A stretch of 63,491 nucleotides of DNA, the filler included, from Octopus bimaculoides (lineage: Eukaryota), in assembly GCF_001194135.2 (NCBI RefSeq). It is 4 parts of 4 records of this genome, joined end to end, with 100 filler letters (N's around TTAATTAATTAA, not from the genome) between each part and the next. Parts side by side here need not be neighbours in the genome. Positions count along the whole stretch, not along the records: positions 32,456 to 60,344 come from NC_069009.1; 3 more parts are not named here. One strand, written 5' to 3'. Within the stretch, counting starts at the first letter, position 1. Each line of letters starts with the position of its first letter. The notes under the pieces are model-generated. The model did not search any database. It saw nothing but the letters and a program-made list of their open reading frames with translations, and was not told the DNA's origin. The translations under genes were made by a program, and so were the position numbers. This document shows positions 37,232 through 50,809 of this stretch, piece by piece.

Positions 37232-37734
37232 GTACGAGAGTTAACTGTATATATATCTGCATATTGTCTCCATATCATTTGATCTCAATATTGGACCTGT
37301 AATCTTGGTTTGATCAAGACCTTGTAGGTTCAATTTTGTAGATAGAAAAATATATACCCAACTGAATGATGGGATCACTCAAATATACAGGACAATACTC
37401 ACCAATGCTTTAAGATCTTAGATTTTGAGCCACAATTATTAGAGCATTTGACAAAAAGGACTTTGCAATAACTTTTCTAAACCTTAATGCTTTGAGTTTA
37501 AATCATATGAAAGTGGTCTTTATCTGCCATCCCTCTGGGACCAATGAAATAAAGTAGCAATCAAAAACTGGAGTCAATGTCATCAAGTAAATATTCTCCT
37601 CAAAATTGTTTGCCTTGTACCTAAATCAGAAAACATTATAATTATTATCCTGTGTTTCAGTAAAGACAGTAAGGCTGAATTATATAACTATATAAACCTA
37701 GCCTGACATAAAAATTACATGCTCACTTCGTCAG

Positions 37735-37778
<44 letters not shown>

Positions 37779-40680
37779 GTTTATATATTCCCAATATTCA
37801 TTGCAATACTATATTTCAATCAGTTTAATGTGTCTTATTGCTGGATATACACATACTACATAGAGTCATGTCTGCCTAGACTCTGTCACTTCTAAAGTTA
37901 TCCTATTGGCCACTGATACATGATAAATGCTTCAGTTCATCTGAAAACATTTTAATTCTGGCCATGCTGGAGTACAATATGCAGATTTTTAATTTCTAGA
38001 CATATACCGTGTGATTCTAATCTCTCATTTGTTTCTAATAACAAAATTTATACCTCTAAAATACATATTAACCTGTTTTTTTCCCCCTTTTTAATTATTT
38101 ATGTATTTTGAATATAATTCTCTTTTCTTCAATTATTATTTTCCCATTTCAATAATTTTTTAAATTTCAAAATTGTATTTTTATATATAAAAAGAACAAG
38201 AATATATACATATATTTAGAAACTGTAAGATCTATATGCACTTTGCCCTTTCACAATCGTCTACTTATTAGACAGGTGTTCTCTTAGACCTGGAAATTAA
38301 TACAAACCCAATAAAGGTAAAGAATAAATTTCCAGCGCTGAAGTATGTTTATATTAACAAAAGAAACTCTATGAATGCCATTATGTATGTCAAATGTTGG
38401 TTATCCTGTTTATGTACATAGGTAGCCAGCCATCTCTGTGAGTAAATAGCCAGCAAACCACACATATCTATGATTTTAAAAAAAAGGAAATTATCCTGCA
38501 CAAATCATCTCCCTTATCCAGATTGCTTAAATGTGATAACAGCTCCTTAATTTTTTCTACCACAACTTACAGTTTCTATAACAAATACATATATGCATAT
38601 ATATATATACATACATACATATANNNNNNNNNNNNNNNNNNNNNNNNNNNNNNNNNNNNNNNNNNNNNNNNNNNNNNNNNNNNNNNNNNNNNNNNNNNNN
38701 NNNNNNNNNNNNNNNNNNNNNNNNNNNNNNNNNNNNNNNNNNNNNNNNNNNNNNNNNNNNNNNNNNNNNNNNNNNNNNNNNNNNNNNNNNNNNNNNNNNN
38801 NNNNNNNNNNNNNNNNNNNNNNNNNNNNNNNNNNNNNNNNNNNNNNNNNNNNNNNNNNNNNNNNNNNNNNNNNNNNNNNNNNNNNNNNNNNNNNNNNNNN
38901 NNNNNNNNNNNNNNNNNNGTGTGTGTGTTTGTGTGTATGTATGTATGTATGTATATATATATGTATATTCTTGTTGCTCTTCATATGTATTGTATCTTTA
39001 TTATTATGTATGCTATGTTGTAATATTTTATTTCATTGAATACATTGTATATATTAATGTATGTATATATATTTATGTGTGTCTATGTGTTGTATATACA
39101 CATACACATGTACACACTTGGATTTATGCGCTGTACAGCAGAAACACCTAAACCACATGCCTAATTGTCTGTACTTCCTCTGATAAATAATAGCAATTGG
39201 CCTATACATTCTACGGGCCTATCAATCTGTCTGGTTACTTCAAGTTTCATAATATCTGGTTTTAACACTGAATATCAATCATCAAACATATATGAGATGC
39301 ATATCAAATGAAAAATTTATTTCTTTATTAATCTTTAAGACAAACTGAAAACTGTGGTTTAGTGCTTTTCAGCTTCCATTTGAAATTAGACTAGGAATAT
39401 TGTATTCAATCATTTTCTTTTGGATTCTATTGTGATGAGCAATTATTTCTATTTAGAAATGCAGTAATTTCACATGATAGTCATATTATTTGTAATATTA
39501 GTATTAAATTTGTCATTTGACATTTTGTTATATTCTATGTATATTTATTTTTGTATTTTGGAAGTTTTGTTGTTTTTGTCATTGTTGTTGTTATTGTTGT
39601 GATTGTTTTTTGTTGTTGTAGCTGTGTTTGTCATCGTTACAATGGAAAACCAAAATTAAAACCAAAACACTGTATATACCCAAGTACACAGACACATGTT
39701 CAGCTGTGCAATGAAATCATGCAATAACATTAAGACTACCAAATTAATAATAATAATAATAATAATAATAATTATAATAATTATAATAAAATTTTGCATT
39801 CTGCAGGCAGAACAAATACACTGATACTTCCCTTGATGCACACACACACACACACACACAAAGATATATATATATATATATGGATATATATATATATATA
39901 TATTCTGTCAGTTCACAATCTTGAAACAAGTGAACAAAATGCCTTCATTTGAAAGCAATAGAAAATGTCTGTAGTGGCCACTTTCAGCAGTGTTATAAGG
40001 GGCAGTGTTATATCTATGGAATCATTCAAGCATTCACATTATGTGCATAGCTGATACTCCTAGGTAGGGAGTTAAGGTTTCTTAACATCAGAAAACATAT
40101 TAGGAGGGTATTGGGAAATATCACAAGTAATGGTGTAATTAACATAAGGGGTGGGGTAAATATAATTGAATAGAAAATAGCTAATCTAACTGCTCAACAA
40201 CTAACTGAAATACTAATGCTTATTAATGCATGTTTATAAGGGTTGAGGTCAGTTATGGGCATAATTCTTGTGAATGGAAGGCTGACATTGATATTAATAC
40301 AAAACAACATTTGAAGATGGCCATAAGTGCATCAACAGTTTAGGTCTTTTGCCCAGACATTTCTATTTTGTAGGGATATTTCTCCCTACATATGGAGATT
40401 ATTCTTAGCTATGAATTCACAAAGTAAAATAGAAAACTATCTCCACAGCTCATATATATATATATATATATATATANNNNNNNNNNNNNNNNNNNNNNNN
40501 NNNNNNNNNNNNNNNNNNNNNNNNNNNNNNNNNNNNNNNNNNNNNNNNNNNNNNNNNNNNNNNNNNNNNNNNNNNNNNNNNNNNNNNNNNNNNNNNNNNN
40601 NNNNNNNNNNNNNNNNNNNNNNNNNNNNNNNNNNNNNNNNNNNNNNNNNNNNNNNNNNNNNNNNNNNNNNNNNNNNNNNN

Positions 40681-40718
<38 letters not shown>

Positions 40719-41441
40719 TATGAATAGTAGTAGTGATTTCAGAGTTTTGCCAAAGAAGACTCTTCATACATGCATAAATATATATTAAGATACAAAATGT
40801 TTGTACTGTGATGTTTGACTATAAATGTATGTGAATATATGTATATATGAATATATGTATCTATAATTATGTACCGTGCTTGTCATTAGAATTGTATATT
40901 TATTTATACTCAGAGTTAACTGTGTAATCTTTCTTTATATGTTTGTCTTAGTTGTTATTATTCATTTTATTTTTTTGCTTTATTACAATCTTTAAAAATT
41001 CACTTGTACAAATTTTCACATTTTTTCTTTGCTTTCTTTTATCATTCTTTCTCTGCCTGCCTTTCTCTCACTATCTTTCTCCCTGTCTCCTTCAAAAATT
41101 CCCCAACACAAAAATTTTTCTAAACAAAATTCCTTATCTTATTTTTTAAAAAAATCTTTTATTCAACATCAACAAATGAAATCAATTCCAACTCGTTTCA
41201 TCTAAAACTCAAAACTTATCAAATGTACAAAATATTTACTCCTCTTTAAACTTCCTTAAAAAATAACAACACAAAACTTTAAAATAAAATAATAATAATG
41301 ATAAAAATTATAATAATAATGATAACAATAAACTAAACTAAAATTAAAACCAACAAAACAAAATTATTACTCAACCGCTCAAAAAACTCCTCTTTCAATC
41401 TATCTGAAAAACCCCAAACCTTCCCATTCACAAAATTCTAG

Positions 41442-41549
41442 AAAGACGAAAAGAAGGGTACCCTTGAGGATCAGATTGTCCAGTGTAACCCAGTACTGGA
41501 GGCATATGGTAATGCCAAAACTACCCGTAACAACAACTCTTCCCGCTTC
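41442..41549 (+). CDS. Mhc: Myosin heavy chain switch-I exon, variant a (36 aa): [36 protein letters not shown]
   Basis: Acceptor ttctAG at 41440-41441 and donor GTAAGT at 41550. 108 nt, phase 0/0, with the myosin NNNSSRF switch-I motif. Confidence 0.96.
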
Positions 41550-41630
41550 GTAAGTACACAGTGATTGTGGTCCACCCAAGTGGATATGCCACACTAGCAA
41601 ACTGAAACTAATATGCAAGAAAAAAGAAGA

Positions 41631-41632
<2 letters not shown>

Positions 41633-41693
<61 letters not shown>

Positions 41694-41917
41694 TAATAAT
41701 AAATAATAATAATGATGGCGATGATGACAACAATGATAATAATAATAAGAAGAAGAATAACAACAATAATAATTAATTAATTAATTAATAATAATAATAA
41801 TCATAATAATAATAATAATAATAATAATAACCACAACAAATACAGCTGCCAAGACAATAACTCTGACCTTTTCCTATAATAATAACTCCCTCCTACAACA
41901 ACAACTATATCACCTCC

Positions 41918-41961
<44 letters not shown>

Positions 41962-42068
41962 TAATATTAATAATAATAAGGATGGTGATAATAACAAAAA
42001 TATTAATAATAATAATGATGATGATGGTAATAATACCAATAATAATAATAATAGTAATAATAATATTG

Positions 42069-42123
<55 letters not shown>

Positions 42124-42231
42124 CCACAGTGAGTACTACTACCATGAAAATAACTCCATTTCTCAATAATAACTCCACTTTTCAACAGCAATAATAACAA
42201 TAATACTGCCTCTATCAATAATAATAATAAT

Positions 42232-42279
<48 letters not shown>

Positions 42280-42384
42280 CACAACTGTGGATGGTAACCA
42301 CAGTTATATCTCTCAACTCAAAAATCTGAACCTCATAACATGTATCTACCCACAAACTGTGTTAACCAACCAAACAACAACAGC

Positions 42385-42416
<32 letters not shown>

Positions 42417-42425
42417 CAACTACTA
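41633..42425. repeat. Long compound (AAT)n/(AAC)n array between switch-I exons a and b
   Basis: Direct reading. Confidence 0.9.
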
Positions 42426-42500
42426 CTACTACTACAAACAGCAAATTGTATGATAAACTAATAATTCTCTATCAAAAGTAACCACTTTTTTTAAAACTAC

Positions 42501-42531
<31 letters not shown>

Positions 42532-43253
42532 CAACATACACACACATATGCATATTCTCTTTTAAAACTCTCTTCAAAACTGACAAAATATAAAATACCT
42601 GTAATTTATAACACTGCTAATATATTTGTGAAAGCATTACATGCATGTATGTATGCATACATGCAGGAACATGCATATATATTAGATATAGATGCAACAA
42701 TGTACTTGCAACTATTACATTTAATCAGAGACCATCTCTGACATTAAAAGCATGAAAAGACAAAGATAATATTAAGATTATGCAGAGTGTTAATTTACAC
42801 TCTTTTTCTTGCATCACTTGGAAAATATGAAGATAAGGAAACATGAACAATTATTAGTCATTTTCCAAGTTTATATTCTTGTTAAAGTTTACCATTTTAT
42901 ACATTTTTTATTACTTTATGAATTATATTACATATGTTTATCTCCTATATTCAGCCAGTGAAGATGTCACTCTCAAATTTGTCACTGAAAGATGACAAAG
43001 ATAGCTTTTGTAACTCAAGACTACATATATATACATTATATATATAAAAATACACGCACACACACCCACATATACACACACACGTTTCTGTGTATGTGTG
43101 ATAGTTGTAGTAGTAATAGCTATGTTCATCTATATTAAAATATAATTAGTGGTACACAGGGTATGAGAACACATGAAAAGGTATGATTCTTTTTGCATCT
43201 AAGATACATCAACTGAAAATAAATAATAATAACAAAAAATAATAAAATTAATG

Positions 43254-43311
<58 letters not shown>

Positions 43312-43332
43312 TTTCTTACAGATAACCTTGTA

Positions 43333-43371
<39 letters not shown>

Positions 43372-43710
43372 TGTGTGTCACTCACCTACCCCTCTCCCAT
43401 TCAACCTTATTTCCTTCTCTCTCTATCTTCCTCTCATTCCAATCCTTTTTATCAATCTCACTCTCTATTTCACTGTGTTATCAAATAAAAGAATGTTATC
43501 TCTATACATTGTCTAACCAAAATTTTCTCCTTTCTTTTCTTTCATTCTCTCTTTACACCCATCCCCTCCCTAATTTATTTCCTCTTTGGTGTTCCATAAA
43601 AATATTTTTTTAAACTATATCTTATGAAACCCTAAACTCTTAATACCAATATCAACAAATCTAAATACTAAAATAACTCACCCTCCAAAACTGTAATAAC
43701 CGAAATGTAG

Positions 43711-43803
43711 ACATCCTTGGAAGACCAAATTGTCCAAGCTAACCCAGTATTGGAAGCCTACGGAAACGCCAAGACTGTCCGTAATAACAACTCATCTAGA
43801 TTC
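43711..43803 (+). CDS. Mhc: Myosin heavy chain switch-I exon, variant b (31 aa): [31 protein letters not shown]
   Basis: Acceptor aatgtAG and donor GTAAGT at 43804. 93 nt, phase 0/0, intact frame. Confidence 0.96.
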
Positions 43804-44019
43804 GTAAGTACTTGACCAAAATCGTGGGCTAATGTCCTCAAAAAAAAAAAAAAGAAAAAAGAAAGAAATGGTGAATCATCTGCTCTTTTGAATTTTTTTT
43901 CTTGACAAACATGATTTGACCAATCAAGAAGTACTTGAAGTCAAAAACTTTGCAGATGAGAAATATTGGATAAAAATATTCAATAAATGAAAATATATAT
44001 ATAAATATTATGTTTGTGT

Positions 44020-44050
<31 letters not shown>

Positions 44051-44198
44051 TATATATATACATATATATATATATGTGTGTGTGTGCATGTATGTGGGTG
44101 TGTGTTTGTGTATATACATATATTTATGTATATATTTACAGAGGACCAAATGATAGACACAACTAAATAACAAAAATAATATTAGTAATAGTATTAAC

Positions 44199-44251
<53 letters not shown>

Positions 44252-45492
44252 TAATAATAACAATGATCATAACAATAATAATAACAAAAAATTAACAAAC
44301 AATAATAATAACAATAATAACAATAACAATTAAATACTAGCAAATCATCAATTTTTTAACCTGCCAAACTATTTTTTTCCCATTTATCTTTGTCTTCCTG
44401 TCATTTACGTGAAAAAAAACCCCCAAAATTTTTCATCCAATAATCTCTACATTAATCTAACCATTCTCTTTTCCTTTCTCTTTAGATCCTTTCTAGCCTA
44501 AACATATATATATATATATATATANNNNNNNNNNNNNNNNNNNNNNNNNNNNNNNNNNNNNNNNNNNNNNNNNNNNNNNNNNNNNNNNNNNNNNNNNNNN
44601 NNNNNNNNNNNNNNNNNNNNNNNNNNNNNNNNNNNNNNNNNNNNNNNNNNNNNNNNNNNNNNNNNNNNNNNNNNNNNNNNNNNNNNNNNNNNNNNNNNNN
44701 NNNNNNNNNNNNNNNNNNNNNNNNNNNNNNNNNNNNNNNNNNNNNNNNNNNNNNNNNNNNNNNNNNNNNNNNNNNNNNNNNNNNNNNNNNNNNNNNNNNN
44801 NNNNNNNNNNNNNNNNNNNNNNNNNNNNNNNNNNNNNNNNNNNNNNNNNNNNNNNNNNNNNNNNNNNNNNNNNNNNNNNNNNNNNNNNNNNNNNNNNNNN
44901 NNNNNNNNNNNNNNNNNNNNNNNNNNNNNNNNNNNNNNNNNNNNNNNNNNNNNNNNNNNNNNNNNNNNNNNNNNNNNNNNNNNNNNNNNNNNNNNNNNNN
45001 NNNNNNNNNNNNNNNNNNNNNNNNNNNNNNNNNNNNNNNNNNNNNNNNNNNNNNNNNNNNNNNNNNNNNNNNNNNNNNNNNNNNNNNNNNNNNNNNNNNN
45101 NNNNNNNNNNNNNNNNNNNNNNNNNNNNNNNNNNNNNNNNNNNNNNNNAATGATACAAATTCATATTTCTCTAAATAGTCATGTGACATGTTTCGAAGAG
45201 CTTCACTGAAAAGGAATAGCAATGCTCATTCCATAACCTCTACCCACCTTAGAAAAAAAAATCCCTTCAATCTCCTTAGATTTTCTGCTCCACAGATATT
45301 ACTGATGGCTGAACAGCACTTTTTTTTAACTAAATATTTTCCATTATAATTTTTCCCTGTCTAACATATTCTTCTCTTTTTCGTGTGATTTCCAAACCTT
45401 CACAAAAAAATTACCCTTCAAAAAACATCTTCCTTCGTAACTGATGAACCCTACAAAACTTACACACAAAACAATAACCGTCTACAAAACAG

Positions 45493-45585
45493 GGTTCTCT
45501 TGAGGACCAGATCATCCAAGCTAACCCGGTATTAGAGGCATATGGCAATGCCAAAACTGTCCGTAATAACAACTCGTCCAGATTT
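45493..45585 (+). CDS. Mhc: Myosin heavy chain switch-I exon, variant c (31 aa): [31 protein letters not shown]
   Basis: Acceptor aaacAG and donor GTAAGT at 45586. 93 nt, phase 0/0, intact frame. Confidence 0.95.
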
Positions 45586-45745
45586 GTAAGTATAACAAAG
45601 GAAAATGAAAAAATATAACAATGTCTTGTAAAAAAAATGATTGAGTTTTTTGTAACTGAAATCTATGGCCAGGTAACATGGACTTATTAAAACCCACTTT
45701 ACCCTTGCAAAAACCATAATATTGTCTAATTTTCTTACTGAAAAA

Positions 45746-45783
<38 letters not shown>

Positions 45784-45996
45784 ACTCACACACACATGAT
45801 ATTGATTTTTAACTATTTCTTATCAATATGTCAATCTATCAGTCAATCTGTTCTTTTATTCATTGTATCTTTTCTAATTGCTGGATCTGTAAGAAGGGGT
45901 AGGATCCATGGTCTTTTCAGCCCCTTCTGAACCAGTGAGACTGATGTCTATAATGTTTAGTTAATGATTCTTATCTATTTATCTCTCTATCTATCC

Positions 45997-46063
<67 letters not shown>

Positions 46064-48765
46064 CATCTATCTATCTATCTATCTTTCTAACTGTCTTTCT
46101 TTCTCTCTCTTTTGCTTTCTGTATTGATACATACACACACACACACACACACACACATAAATGCATAATCTTATAACTCCTGGATTTATACTCTTCTTAT
46201 CTCTCTAATATGATTCAAACAAGAAAGTAGTCTAAAAACCTTTTTAAAATCTAACACCAAAATAATACCCATTAACATAATATTTTAGTAAAGACTTATA
46301 GTCACTGTAGGAAATAATACCTGATTGTTTGAGATAATATCAAATAACAGCTATCAACAAGGAAGCCATTTCTTTAACCAAATAACTATGCCTGTTCCCA
46401 TTTAAGAAATATAAAGAAGACTTTTATCATTTCTAAATCAACATAAGAAGACATTTCATTTTGTCATCTTCTGAGTCCAATCGTTTGAAATACTGAATAG
46501 ATGAAAGTTGCCCAACTCCATCAAATTTCTGTTTCTCTGCTATTTTGGCATTCCATGACATAGCCTGAACAGAGGTGTTGTGCCTCATATTTATTATTAT
46601 ATATCTATAGCAAAATGGCTGCAGTCTTTAAATTCAGAATTCATTTGTGGATATCGTTTTCCACCAAAATATAACACACACACACACACACACACATATG
46701 CATGCAATTGGCATTCTGAATGGGGAAAAGAGACAGACAGAAAAAAGACATTAAAATGGAAGGGGAGGAGTGAGGATGGTTGGTGGTTTAGTTTATGGGA
46801 CTGACAGTTGTTTAAGTTATGCATGCATGCATATATCCATATAACAATGACCATTAAGATACAGACAGGTGGCAGGTTAGAATGTAGTCAAACATTCAGA
46901 ACTGTCATTGTATGCATATATACAATGTGCGCACATGCACACGCACACACACACACACAGCATGGAAGACAATCATAAATGAATTCTGTAATTAGTATTC
47001 CTTTAGCAGTTTTGGTATCATAGGATAGTAATGGTGCCACATTGAGATTTGAACCAGGCAACACAAAGGTTTTAATGAGAACAATCTGTCTTGCTGCATT
47101 AGCCATAAACACTAGTGGTTCTACAAATTGCATCTACCTGAGACAGCAAAGTGGCTTATATGTGGCTGCTCATATATATATATAGCAACTAAATTTCCTT
47201 GAAATCAATGTGTGCCATACTGAAAAACTCAGGAAAACATTTGATAATGCAGCCCGAGACACAAAATGCCTAAAATAAATATAAGCTGGTCAAAGCTTTG
47301 TATATAGATCTGTTTGACCAGAATTGAACTGGTGTTAAACAACAATAACTATAGCCACTACTAGATAATATAACCCCAGATATACTGTTTGAATAAGAGA
47401 TAAGGTGGTCAGCTGCAGCTGGAATGCTTTTTATCTTTTATTTAATCAAAATATTAGTAACAAAAGCAATAACAAATATTAAACTATTCAACAGACATTT
47501 AGAAGATGATGAAAATAAAAATAGTATCTGTAAGCAAGCAAAGCAACTCCCCAAATGATACTTTATGTAACATGTTATAACAAAGGAAAAAAGTTCTCAA
47601 CAACTCTAGTTAATGTTTTAAAAACTACACTGAAATTCATAATAATTAACAATTTTTATTAACAATGATTAAATATAAACTAACCATAATAATAACCGTA
47701 TTTCACTCCCCCTTCAAAAGATGAGTTTTTAATATATAAGTATTGAAATGTGTTTAAATCTTAAAGTATGCACTGTAACTACTATGAAGCAAGAAGTAAT
47801 TCAGCTGTAAATTTGTATTTTCTCTAGTGGCATTTACGTATAAATATATACACCCAAACGTATATACATACATATATATGCATATGTATTTATGTATATA
47901 TGTATAGATAGATATAGGAATAAATTTCACAGATATGAATTATGCTTATTATTACTCCAACTTATGTACATTTATATTTTCTCATCTCTGATTCAAATGA
48001 TTATGTTGAAGTTTCCACTGTGCTGAAGAAGCCTAACAAGAAATATGCCTTCAACATGTATACATGGTCTACTACACTTGTTGGGAAGGCTTAAAACCAG
48101 ATAAATGAATACTTTATAGCTAGTTGTATTTATCTTTCAATGCTTACAATGTTAAATATGTTAAAACTAACTTAACTATCTTTAAAAAAAAAACTTTTTT
48201 ATTATCAAATTTATAATGTAACACAGTGTTGATATGTTTCAGTAAATTTCTGAACATAATGACGAATTTTAAAAAATTTAATAAAACACCAAACGTCAGT
48301 CATAATTAATCAGGCTGTTTGCAAAAATAACTGAACAAAACAATATTCTTTCATAAAATTCAGGTAGAATGTAATTAAATAATCAAAATACTTTAAACAT
48401 TAGAGATTTCTTGTTATCATAAGGCAGATTAGTGCTAAACAAGGTAAATTCCTTCTCAGCCACAATCTTAATAAATAACAATAACAATTTATAGCAAATA
48501 ATAAATAACCACAGTAGACACCTTTTATCTAACTTGCATGCTACACTTTACCTTCCCACAAAGACCTTCACTACTTAATCACGTAATTTGTATCTTTTAA
48601 CATTTTATTTTTGTGTTTTTTCTTTGAAAACGTATATATTTGTATATATATACGTATACATGGCCAAAGATTTTGATTACAAAGAGCTCTTGAAAAATGT
48701 ATCTTTTCGTTTTTTTACAAACAATAAAACTTGATTGATATATGTTAAGAAACATATATCATACT

Positions 48766-48820
<55 letters not shown>

Positions 48821-50809
48821 NNNNNNNNNNNNNNNNNNNNNNNNNNNNNNNNNNNNNNNNNNNNNNNNNNNNNNNNNNNNNNNNNNNNNNNNNNNNNNNN
48901 NNNNNNNNNNNNNNNNNNNNNNNNNNNNNNNNNNNNNNNNNNNNNNNNNNNNNNNNNNNNNNNNNNNNNNNNNNNNNNNNNNNNNNNNNNNNNNNNNNNN
49001 NNNNNNNNNNNNNNNNNNNNNNNNNNNNNNNNNNNNNNNNNNNNNNNNNNNNNNNNNNNNNNNNNNNNNNNNNNNNNNNNNNNNNNNNNNNNNNNNNNNN
49101 NNNNNNNNNNNNNNNNNNNNNNNNNNNNNNNNNNNNNNNNNNNNNNNNNNNNNNNNNNNNNNNNNNNNNNNNNNNNNNNNNNNNNNNNNNNNNNNNNNNN
49201 NNNNNNNNNNNNNNNNNNNNNNNNNNNNNNNNNNNNNNNNNNNNNNNNNNNNNNNNNNNNNNNNNNNNNNNNNNNNNNNNNNNNNNNNNNNNNNNNNNNN
49301 NNNNNNNNNNNNNNNNNNNNNNNNNNNNNNNNNNNNNNNNNNNNNNNNNNNNNNNNNNNNNNNNNNNNNNNNNNNNNNNNNNNNNNNNNNNNNNNNNNNN
49401 NNNNNNNNNNNNNNNNNNNNNNNNNNNNNNNNTATATATATCTGTAAACTATATATTTAATATTATTAATTAGTCTTTTAGGTAATTCCAAGACTTGGTA
49501 ATAAACCTGTTTTTTTACATTAAAAAATCATCAGACCCAATGTTTTAAATATCCTGCCTACTCCCTAATGTAAAATCATTCATCAGCAACAACGTCAAAC
49601 AATAACAATATTAATATTAATATTAATAATAATATACCAATAATTATAATAACAGTAATAAAAAATATAAAAATGATGATGATGATGATTTAACAAAAAT
49701 TTCCTCGAATTGTACAAATCAACCTCATCTGTTTTATTTTGAATTTCACATATAAAGTACAATTAATTAACTAATCAAAAGTAATAACCTAAATGACCAA
49801 ATAATTACTAAGATTTATCGAGAAATTAACAGACTGAAAAACAATGAATAATGATTTTAAAAAATGAATTACTGGTTAATACATAATATGTATATATATA
49901 TTTACATGCATATATGTGATATATACTCAAATATATTTATATATATATATGTATTATATATATATTAATTAGTAATTAATTAACTTCCCCTCCCACTTTG
50001 AATTTTTCTTATTGAGACCTTGATAACGATGGTAAATTGTTATCAAACATATTGAACAAAAAAATCAAATCACATTTGACTGAATATCTTTAATAAATGT
50101 TTTGAAAAAATATTTATTTAAATATTTTTTCAAATACTTAATATTAAAATAAAATAGATTAACTCATTTAAATTAACCAATCAAATGAAAATATTAATCA
50201 ACACTTGATTTTTATTACAAATAAATTAACTAATTCATGAAAAAATAATTTTTCTATATTAAATGAAAATATTTATTAAACAAATGAATTAACATCTTAC
50301 TGTAATATTTTTTAATTAATCAATTTGATGAAAATTATTTTAGAAAATAGATTAACATTTTATTTAGTAATGTTTTTTTATTAAATTAACCAATTAGATA
50401 CAAATAAACCATTTTTTATGAATTAACAATTGATGTAATATTTAATGATTAACCAACTAGATTATATAATATAAAAATATAAATTAACATTTTATTTAAT
50501 TTTTTAAACTACTTAACTAATTAGACGAATATATTTTTTTCTAAATTAAAATATAAATATAAATAAATAGTACAAGAAAATATAGGCACCTACATGAAGA
50601 ATGATTGTTGGTTTTTAACTGACAACCAAAGCCATATATTTGTATAGGCTTGTGGGTTAGTGTGGGAGAGAGGGAAAACATTTGATTTGATTGACACCAC
50701 TCTTTTACTGGTAAGAATGCATTTTACAGAACCTGAAATAGTGAAGGTAAAAAAAATTAGAACATATTCTGTTTTTTTTTTTCCTGTTTCTGATCTATTA
50801 TGAGACTCA

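Follow-up and report, generated by a model that had tools for sequence, protein, structure and literature searches.

The window analysed here is a 63,491-nucleotide stretch of Octopus bimaculoides DNA (RefSeq assembly GCF_001194135.2) composed of four parts of four records joined by 100-letter fillers, in which positions 32456 to 60344, hereafter the piece, come from NC_069009.1. Three paralogous exons of this piece (a, b and c), situated between a P-loop exon and a GKFIRIHF exon of a muscle myosin heavy chain gene (Mhc), very probably represent a cluster-3 array of mutually exclusive exons (MXEs), the class defined as "end of loop-1 until end of switch-1" (Kollmar & Hatje 2014, PMC3912159). 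Each functional mRNA would carry exactly one of the three copies, because the exon encodes switch I, which is present once per motor, and the cassette would work together with an upstream alternative pair of P-loop exons (cluster-2) supplying the first half of loop 1. Comparison with known myosins lends indirect support to such one-exon-per-mRNA usage in octopus: squid isoform A (see below) holds an a-type segment only, and an octopus protein model holds c only.

Reading of positions 40800-46400 combined with all-frame translation of the piece yielded the three paralogous exons on the plus strand (Table 1), and when the octopus protein model was aligned to the piece by brute-force splicing, the same borders were recovered exactly for exon c, as were those of nine further exons. 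The first-pass annotation had described three intact paralogous exons in phase 0/0 with GTAAGT donors, a description confirmed by splice sites, frames and lengths; all three donors are strong (GTAAGTA), and all three lengths are multiples of 3 (108, 93 and 93 nt). Intron a-b spans 2161 nt and intron b-c about 1689 nt with the estimated gap length included (at least 1065 nt of readable sequence). The gap in the latter begins 721 nt past the end of exon b and ends 344 nt before exon c, so that no exon is touched, and, with separate splice sites for every exon, no reading frame needs to cross it. By tblastn and blastn, the readable cluster-3 copies amount to exactly three and the readable P-loop exons to one; no fourth copy and no second P-loop exon was found in the readable sequence of the whole piece, whose N gaps (34845-35455, 36069-36898, 38624-38918, 40477-40680, 44525-45148 and 48821-49432) could hide more. 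That the cassette lies between one P-loop and one GKFIRIHF exon, as claimed earlier, holds for both flanks; the P-loop exon itself, however, is better regarded as one of an alternative (cluster-2) pair.

Table 1. Coordinates of the cluster-3 exons, their splice partners and associated tracts in the octopus window, and of corresponding arrays in loci of other molluscs.
Feature	Position	Strand	Description
P-loop exon, "2a" (TEST.../catch-like) type	32757-32868	+	(T)GESGAGKTESTKKVIMYFAEVAATQDRKREKADGTRA; ends ...KADGTRA, GCT/gtaagt, phase 0
Four N gaps in 2a-3a intron	span 34845-40680	.	likely site of the missing "2b" (TENT...) exon
AG-free, G-poor tract before exon a	40952-41439	+	488 nt; rank 1 of 1011 AG-free runs in the piece
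Exon a (3a)	41442-41549	+	108 nt, 36 aa; AG acceptor, GTAAGT donor, phase 0/0
AG-free, G-poor tract before exon b	43492-43708	+	217 nt; rank 3 of 1011
Exon b (3b)	43711-43803	+	93 nt, 31 aa; AG acceptor, GTAAGT donor, phase 0/0
Assembly gap within b-c intron	44525-45148	.	left edge is a (TA)n microsatellite
AG-free tract before exon c	45317-45490	+	174 nt; rank 9 of 1011
Exon c (3c)	45493-45585	+	93 nt, 31 aa; AG acceptor, GTAAGT donor, phase 0/0
GKFIRIHF exon, constitutive	52897-52960	+	GKFIRIHFGTQGKIAGADIET(Y); phase 0 start; common downstream splice partner
Lottia gigantea L002	9552-13034		2 P-loop exons; 3 intact 93-nt cluster-3 exons, AG...GTAAGT
Plakobranchus ocellatus L004	6316-11091		2 P-loop exons; 3 cluster-3 exons, the first 99 nt
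Potamilus streckersoni L003 (mussel, gap-free)	7974-12164		2 P-loop exons; 2 cluster-3 exons

A homologue search with a triple-concatenated query returned octopus and squid myosins. The O. bimaculoides UniProt myosin motor model (P0251) is 100% identical to the exons of the window and carries the window P-loop exon together with exon c, while myosin heavy chain (MHC) isoform A of the squid Doryteuthis pealeii (P0262) is 89% identical to the window and is also the window's best match in PDB (S1 structures 3I5F-3I5I). Judged by these matches, the host gene is the class-II muscle Mhc of O. bimaculoides, which bears out the earlier attribution to muscle myosin. The three exons end in ...AKT(T/V)RNNNSSRF, the GKFIRIHF exon comes next, and the exon upstream of them contains GESGAGKT; the cluster-3 exon codes for loop 1 at its C-terminal end, for the next helix and for switch I up to NNNSSRF, in keeping with the location in the switch-I region that had been proposed. 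The exon a peptide is identical in all 36 residues to squid isoform A and to a Lottia myosin (P0012), and the exon c peptide in all 31 residues to isoforms of the whelk Babylonia areolata. Exons a and c are ancient variants common to squid, limpets and whelks, and exon b is a third copy that looks equally old. As a separate observation on the octopus protein model, P0251 jumps after ...VLFTPPEG to LIDAALVLHQ..., and loop 2 and the next motor segments, which squid holds, are missing from it (compare window positions 60124-60344); the model is therefore incomplete, presumably owing to assembly gaps.

Arrays of this class are well documented. Cluster-3 is known in scallops, Crassostrea Mhc2, Aplysia, Biomphalaria, Lottia Mhc5 and Mhc6, and Capitella, and it adjoins cluster-2, the alternative P-loop exons (PMC3912159). 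In scallop, according to Nyitray et al. (1994) as cited in PMC3912159, catch muscle combines 2a with 3b and striated muscle 2b with 3a, and three squid isoforms are described whose differences fall at the C-terminus and within cluster-3 (Matulef 1998 and Shaffer & Kier 2012, as cited in PMC4757648 and PMC3912159). The earlier expectation that the cassette would prove partly known is therefore upheld: it corresponds to MXE cluster-3 of molluscan Mhc, and squid cDNAs differ exactly here (PMC3912159). Homologous arrays were also located in Lottia, Plakobranchus and Potamilus (Table 1), with a conserved exon order 2a-2b-3a-3b(-3c) and inter-exon introns of 232-1159 nt. A three-member cluster-3 is not special to octopus, since both Lottia and Plakobranchus have three. 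The octopus trio resides in a muscle Mhc host, occupies the same position, agrees in frame, splice sites, length and similarity, and has homologous arrays in its relatives; on this sequence evidence it belongs to MXE cluster-3, as a genomic instance of a well-described arrangement that a specialist would expect. Side by side, the molluscan and annelid clusters share with the octopus trio the exon span, the phase, the 93-nt unit, the place after cluster-2 and the IVQC/TTR and IIQA/TVR peptides. They differ in membership (two exons in scallop, oyster and Potamilus vs. three in octopus) and in intron length, the octopus cluster introns being 2-10 times longer than those of known mollusc arrays. 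In the gene models for Mytilus coruscus (P0337) and for Elysia (P0286), two cluster-3 exons are wrongly read in tandem.

A close parallel is with squid, where isoform A of D. pealeii contains the exact exon a peptide of octopus and isoforms differ in the cluster-3 region; the squid evidence considered here, however, is cDNA and protein, and the P-loop exon of squid isoform A is of the TENT type, which does not show up in the octopus window. Another parallel is provided by the clusters of Drosophila Mhc (3, 7, 9, 11 and 15), where one muscle Mhc gene likewise gains its diversity from in-frame arrays of motor-domain MXEs, but the varied motor regions differ from those of octopus. Arthropods other than Daphnia lack P-loop and switch-I clusters (PMC3912159).

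The proposed partnership with cluster-2 is suggested by comparison with other species. The P-loop exon present in the window (TESTKKVIMYFAEVAAT...) is of the 2a type and gives the first part of loop 1; Lottia, Potamilus and Plakobranchus each have two P-loop exons, of which the first is likewise 2a-type. Isoforms of bivalves and gastropods (Argopecten, Saccostrea, Mercenaria, Babylonia) combine the TESTKK-type P-loop exon with IIQA...TVR (or TIR) exons. The P-loop exon of squid isoform A (TENTKKVIQYFALVAAS...KKEEEKK, TENT-type) is unlike octopus 2a: the two part company immediately behind the P-loop, the remaining motor being about 90% identical. Because the divergence is confined to this place, an octopus 2b exon should exist, and because the order 2a-2b-3a is kept in three molluscs and the readable octopus sequence does not contain it, 2b is probably located between 32869 and 41441, in one of the four N gaps of this intron. 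Loop 1 would accordingly be read as a product of two alternative modules, a cluster-2 exon followed by a cluster-3 exon.

The boundary between these two modules differs between limpet and octopus. The first 15 nt of octopus exon a (41442-41456, AAAGACGAAAAGAAG, encoding KDEKK) correspond to the 15 nt that close a Lottia P-loop exon (AAAGACGAGAAAAAG followed by gt; L001 11146-11180), a stretch separated from GGTACA... by a 157-nt intron; the two species are thus five codons apart in the placement of the intron after loop 1, the KDEKK-coding stretch being a 5' extension of exon a in octopus and the end of the P-loop exon in Lottia. Plakobranchus has a two-codon extension (KE). An internal in-frame AG at 41455-41456, 15 nt into exon a and just before GGT, could act as an alternative acceptor producing a 93-nt exon a without KDEKK.

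Pairwise comparison of the copies over the shared 93 nt gave 26 (a/b), 19 (a/c) and 21 (b/c) nucleotide differences, mostly synonymous, corresponding to 72-80% identity in nucleotides and 87-94% in protein. The selection analysis between variants that had been called for was carried out by the Nei-Gojobori method, and the proportion of nonsynonymous differences (pN, 0.06-0.13) proved to be well below that of synonymous differences (pS, 0.56-0.80) in every pair (Fisher p <= 1.6e-5 for each), most clearly for b vs. c, which are separated by two amino acids (pS 0.80, pN 0.06, Fisher p 1.7e-11). The silent-site distance among the octopus copies is as great as their distance to limpet exons, and the 400-nt intron flanks of a, b and c show no significant similarity, only low-complexity matches; shared selector-like repeats in these flanks were considered as a candidate and rejected, the matches being of low complexity only. 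Exons a, b and c are under purifying selection with saturated synonymous sites and, because they have diverged at silent sites and have unrelated flanks, they are old duplicates and not haplotype or assembly copies. The earlier assertion of purifying selection rather than an assembly duplicate is thus substantiated by both pS vs. pN and the unrelated flanks.

The manner in which a single exon could be selected was approached by exclusion. Nonsense-mediated decay cannot police double inclusion because all exon lengths are multiples of 3, steric hindrance is ruled out by introns of 2161 and ~1689 nt, and an incompatible U2/U12 pair, tried as a candidate, was rejected since only GT-AG splice sites occur (each exon pairs an AG acceptor with a GTAAGT donor). 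The argument of the first-pass annotation that neither decay nor steric hindrance can enforce exclusivity was checked in its premises (lengths and introns); its reasoning is sound and standard (PMC6071210). An active mechanism would presumably be needed.

With these three routes excluded, competing RNA structures come into consideration, in which one intronic docking site pairs with one of several exon-adjacent selectors, as in insect Dscam, 14-3-3zeta and Drosophila Mhc. This explanation is standard where a cluster comprises at least three in-frame exons, and it has been reported for Drosophila Mhc (PMC6071210); in octopus, on the other hand, no such structures are detectable above shuffled sequences. 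A seed-and-duplex search of 32869-52896 produced only microsatellite-type or local hairpin pairings, and windows able to pair with both inter-exon introns were about as stable as shuffled ones (median -12.0 vs. -11.6 kcal/mol; 1st percentile -18.8 vs. -17.7 kcal/mol). The compact Lottia cluster likewise lacked a docking/selector signal. The negative result for octopus comes from a single sequence, in which short conserved stems could escape. Stable stems are further disfavoured because the sense strand across the cluster is depleted in G (7-10%). On balance, a docking/selector mechanism appears unlikely, although it has more in its favour than any of the other alternatives weighed below. A near-perfect palindrome at 52400-52438 (duplex -46.6 kcal/mol), within a GC-richer patch (52250-52720) some 460-500 nt upstream of the GKFIRIHF exon, may be a small repeat element.

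Exon choice most likely would act at the acceptors, where weak proximal pyrimidine tracts lie behind long AG-free tracts rich in CU or CA. The AG-free zones of the three exons (Table 1) compare with 21-120 nt for nine constitutive exons; the tract before exon a is CU-rich, then CA/A-rich, with ~2% G in its last 200 nt, and over the final 20 nt pyrimidines account for a fraction of 0.40-0.45 before b and c vs. 0.70-0.85 before the constitutive exons. In Lottia, Plakobranchus and Potamilus, too, the AG-free zones of cluster-3 exons are mostly longer (62-300 nt) than those of the GKFIRIHF exons (15-37 nt). This acceptor pattern suggests distant branch points and protein regulators, while the acceptor features by themselves do not explain "one and only one" exon. 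Vertebrate MXEs of tropomyosin and alpha-actinin have distant branch points and long pyrimidine tracts; like the octopus exons, they combine long AG-free zones with weak proximal acceptors. In exons 2 and 3 of alpha-tropomyosin, exclusivity arises because the branch point and the donor upstream of it lie too near each other, a logic that fails in octopus because the inter-exon introns are ~1.7-2.2 kb long. A broader conjecture, which we put forward as a rather doubtful one, is that molluscan cluster-3 arrays may pick one exon without docking/selector RNA, via proteins acting at distant branch points in AG-free, G-depleted CU/CA tracts, perhaps coupled to P-loop choice (2a with TVR-type, 2b with TTR-type exons), with exon b as a cephalopod-specific third kinetic variant.

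Several points weigh against the interpretation of the trio as a working cluster-3 array. The case for one exon per mRNA and for exon b draws on genome and protein sequences. The 2b exon is not seen in the readable sequence of the piece, and the pairing with cluster-2 is carried over from other species. The long AG-free tracts partly follow from a general G depletion at 40.5-46.5 kb: the sense strand of 40456-46455 contains 7-10% G with a GC skew of -0.24 to -0.48, as compared with 12-19% G in most other introns of the gene, and a second G-poor zone occupies 48456-50455. According to Shaffer & Kier (2016), as cited in PMC4757648, O. bimaculoides has six MHC isoforms, all of them present in every tissue studied, which weakens a simple tissue-specific tuning. 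Finally, none of the 360 myosins compared shows the residue combination of exon b (IVQA with TVR).

The last point would be accommodated if one exon, most likely b, were a silent relic that is no longer spliced, the working cassette being the ancestral pair a/c. Exon b also has the weakest proximal pyrimidine tract (0.40) and is flanked by strongly complementary (CA)n/(UG)n tracts (-49 kcal/mol). However, its reading frame is still open and bordered by an AG acceptor and a GTAAGT donor; it stands only two amino acids from c at saturated silent sites, and over such a time an exon no longer in use would have degenerated. Moreover, three-member clusters are found in two gastropods, and the six isoforms reported for O. 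bimaculoides are easier to reach with three variants. A relic status of exon b is consequently considered improbable. The tracts in question (CA-rich at 43045-43083 upstream, TG-rich at 44080-44118 downstream) would loop out exon b when paired, but this pairing, although the strongest that the docking/selector searches returned, is probably a chance property of microsatellites. An error of assembly, either through haplotype copies or through contigs wrongly scaffolded over gaps, could also mimic a triplication. This possibility is prompted by the gap-rich assembly, with one gap between b and c, and can be dismissed as extremely improbable given that the copies differ at 20-28% of nucleotides and have unrelated flanks, whereas alleles would be near-identical, and that their order and orientation agree with the gene and with the Lottia and Plakobranchus arrays.

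Other features of the piece are of a more general nature. Large (AAT)n arrays are present in both inter-exon introns (41631-42278, 43222-43309 and 44166-44330), the first of them beginning 82 nt past the exon a donor and extending for ~650 nt. Rfam and tRNA scans of the piece gave no match, and no transposon-like open reading frames were found in it.

With regard to function, exon a adds five charged residues (KDEKK) to loop 1, changing its length and charge, and the other variant sites are V/I and C/A in the helix after loop 1 and T/V just before switch I. The length of loop 1 has been linked to ADP release and sliding velocity (literature cited in PMC3912159), and the differences between a, b and c would tune ADP release, ATPase rate and shortening speed, a kinetic effect that we infer for the octopus variants from established myosin biochemistry.

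Overall, the cassette offers an account of the way in which a single octopus gene can yield muscle motors that differ in the kinetics of the nucleotide pocket, and it provides exact genomic coordinates for variants hitherto described only from cDNA. It thereby bears on the debate whether the speed of cephalopod muscle is set by myosin isoforms or only by sarcomere ultrastructure. Of wider interest is the manner in which an in-frame three-exon array with kilobase-long introns stays mutually exclusive.

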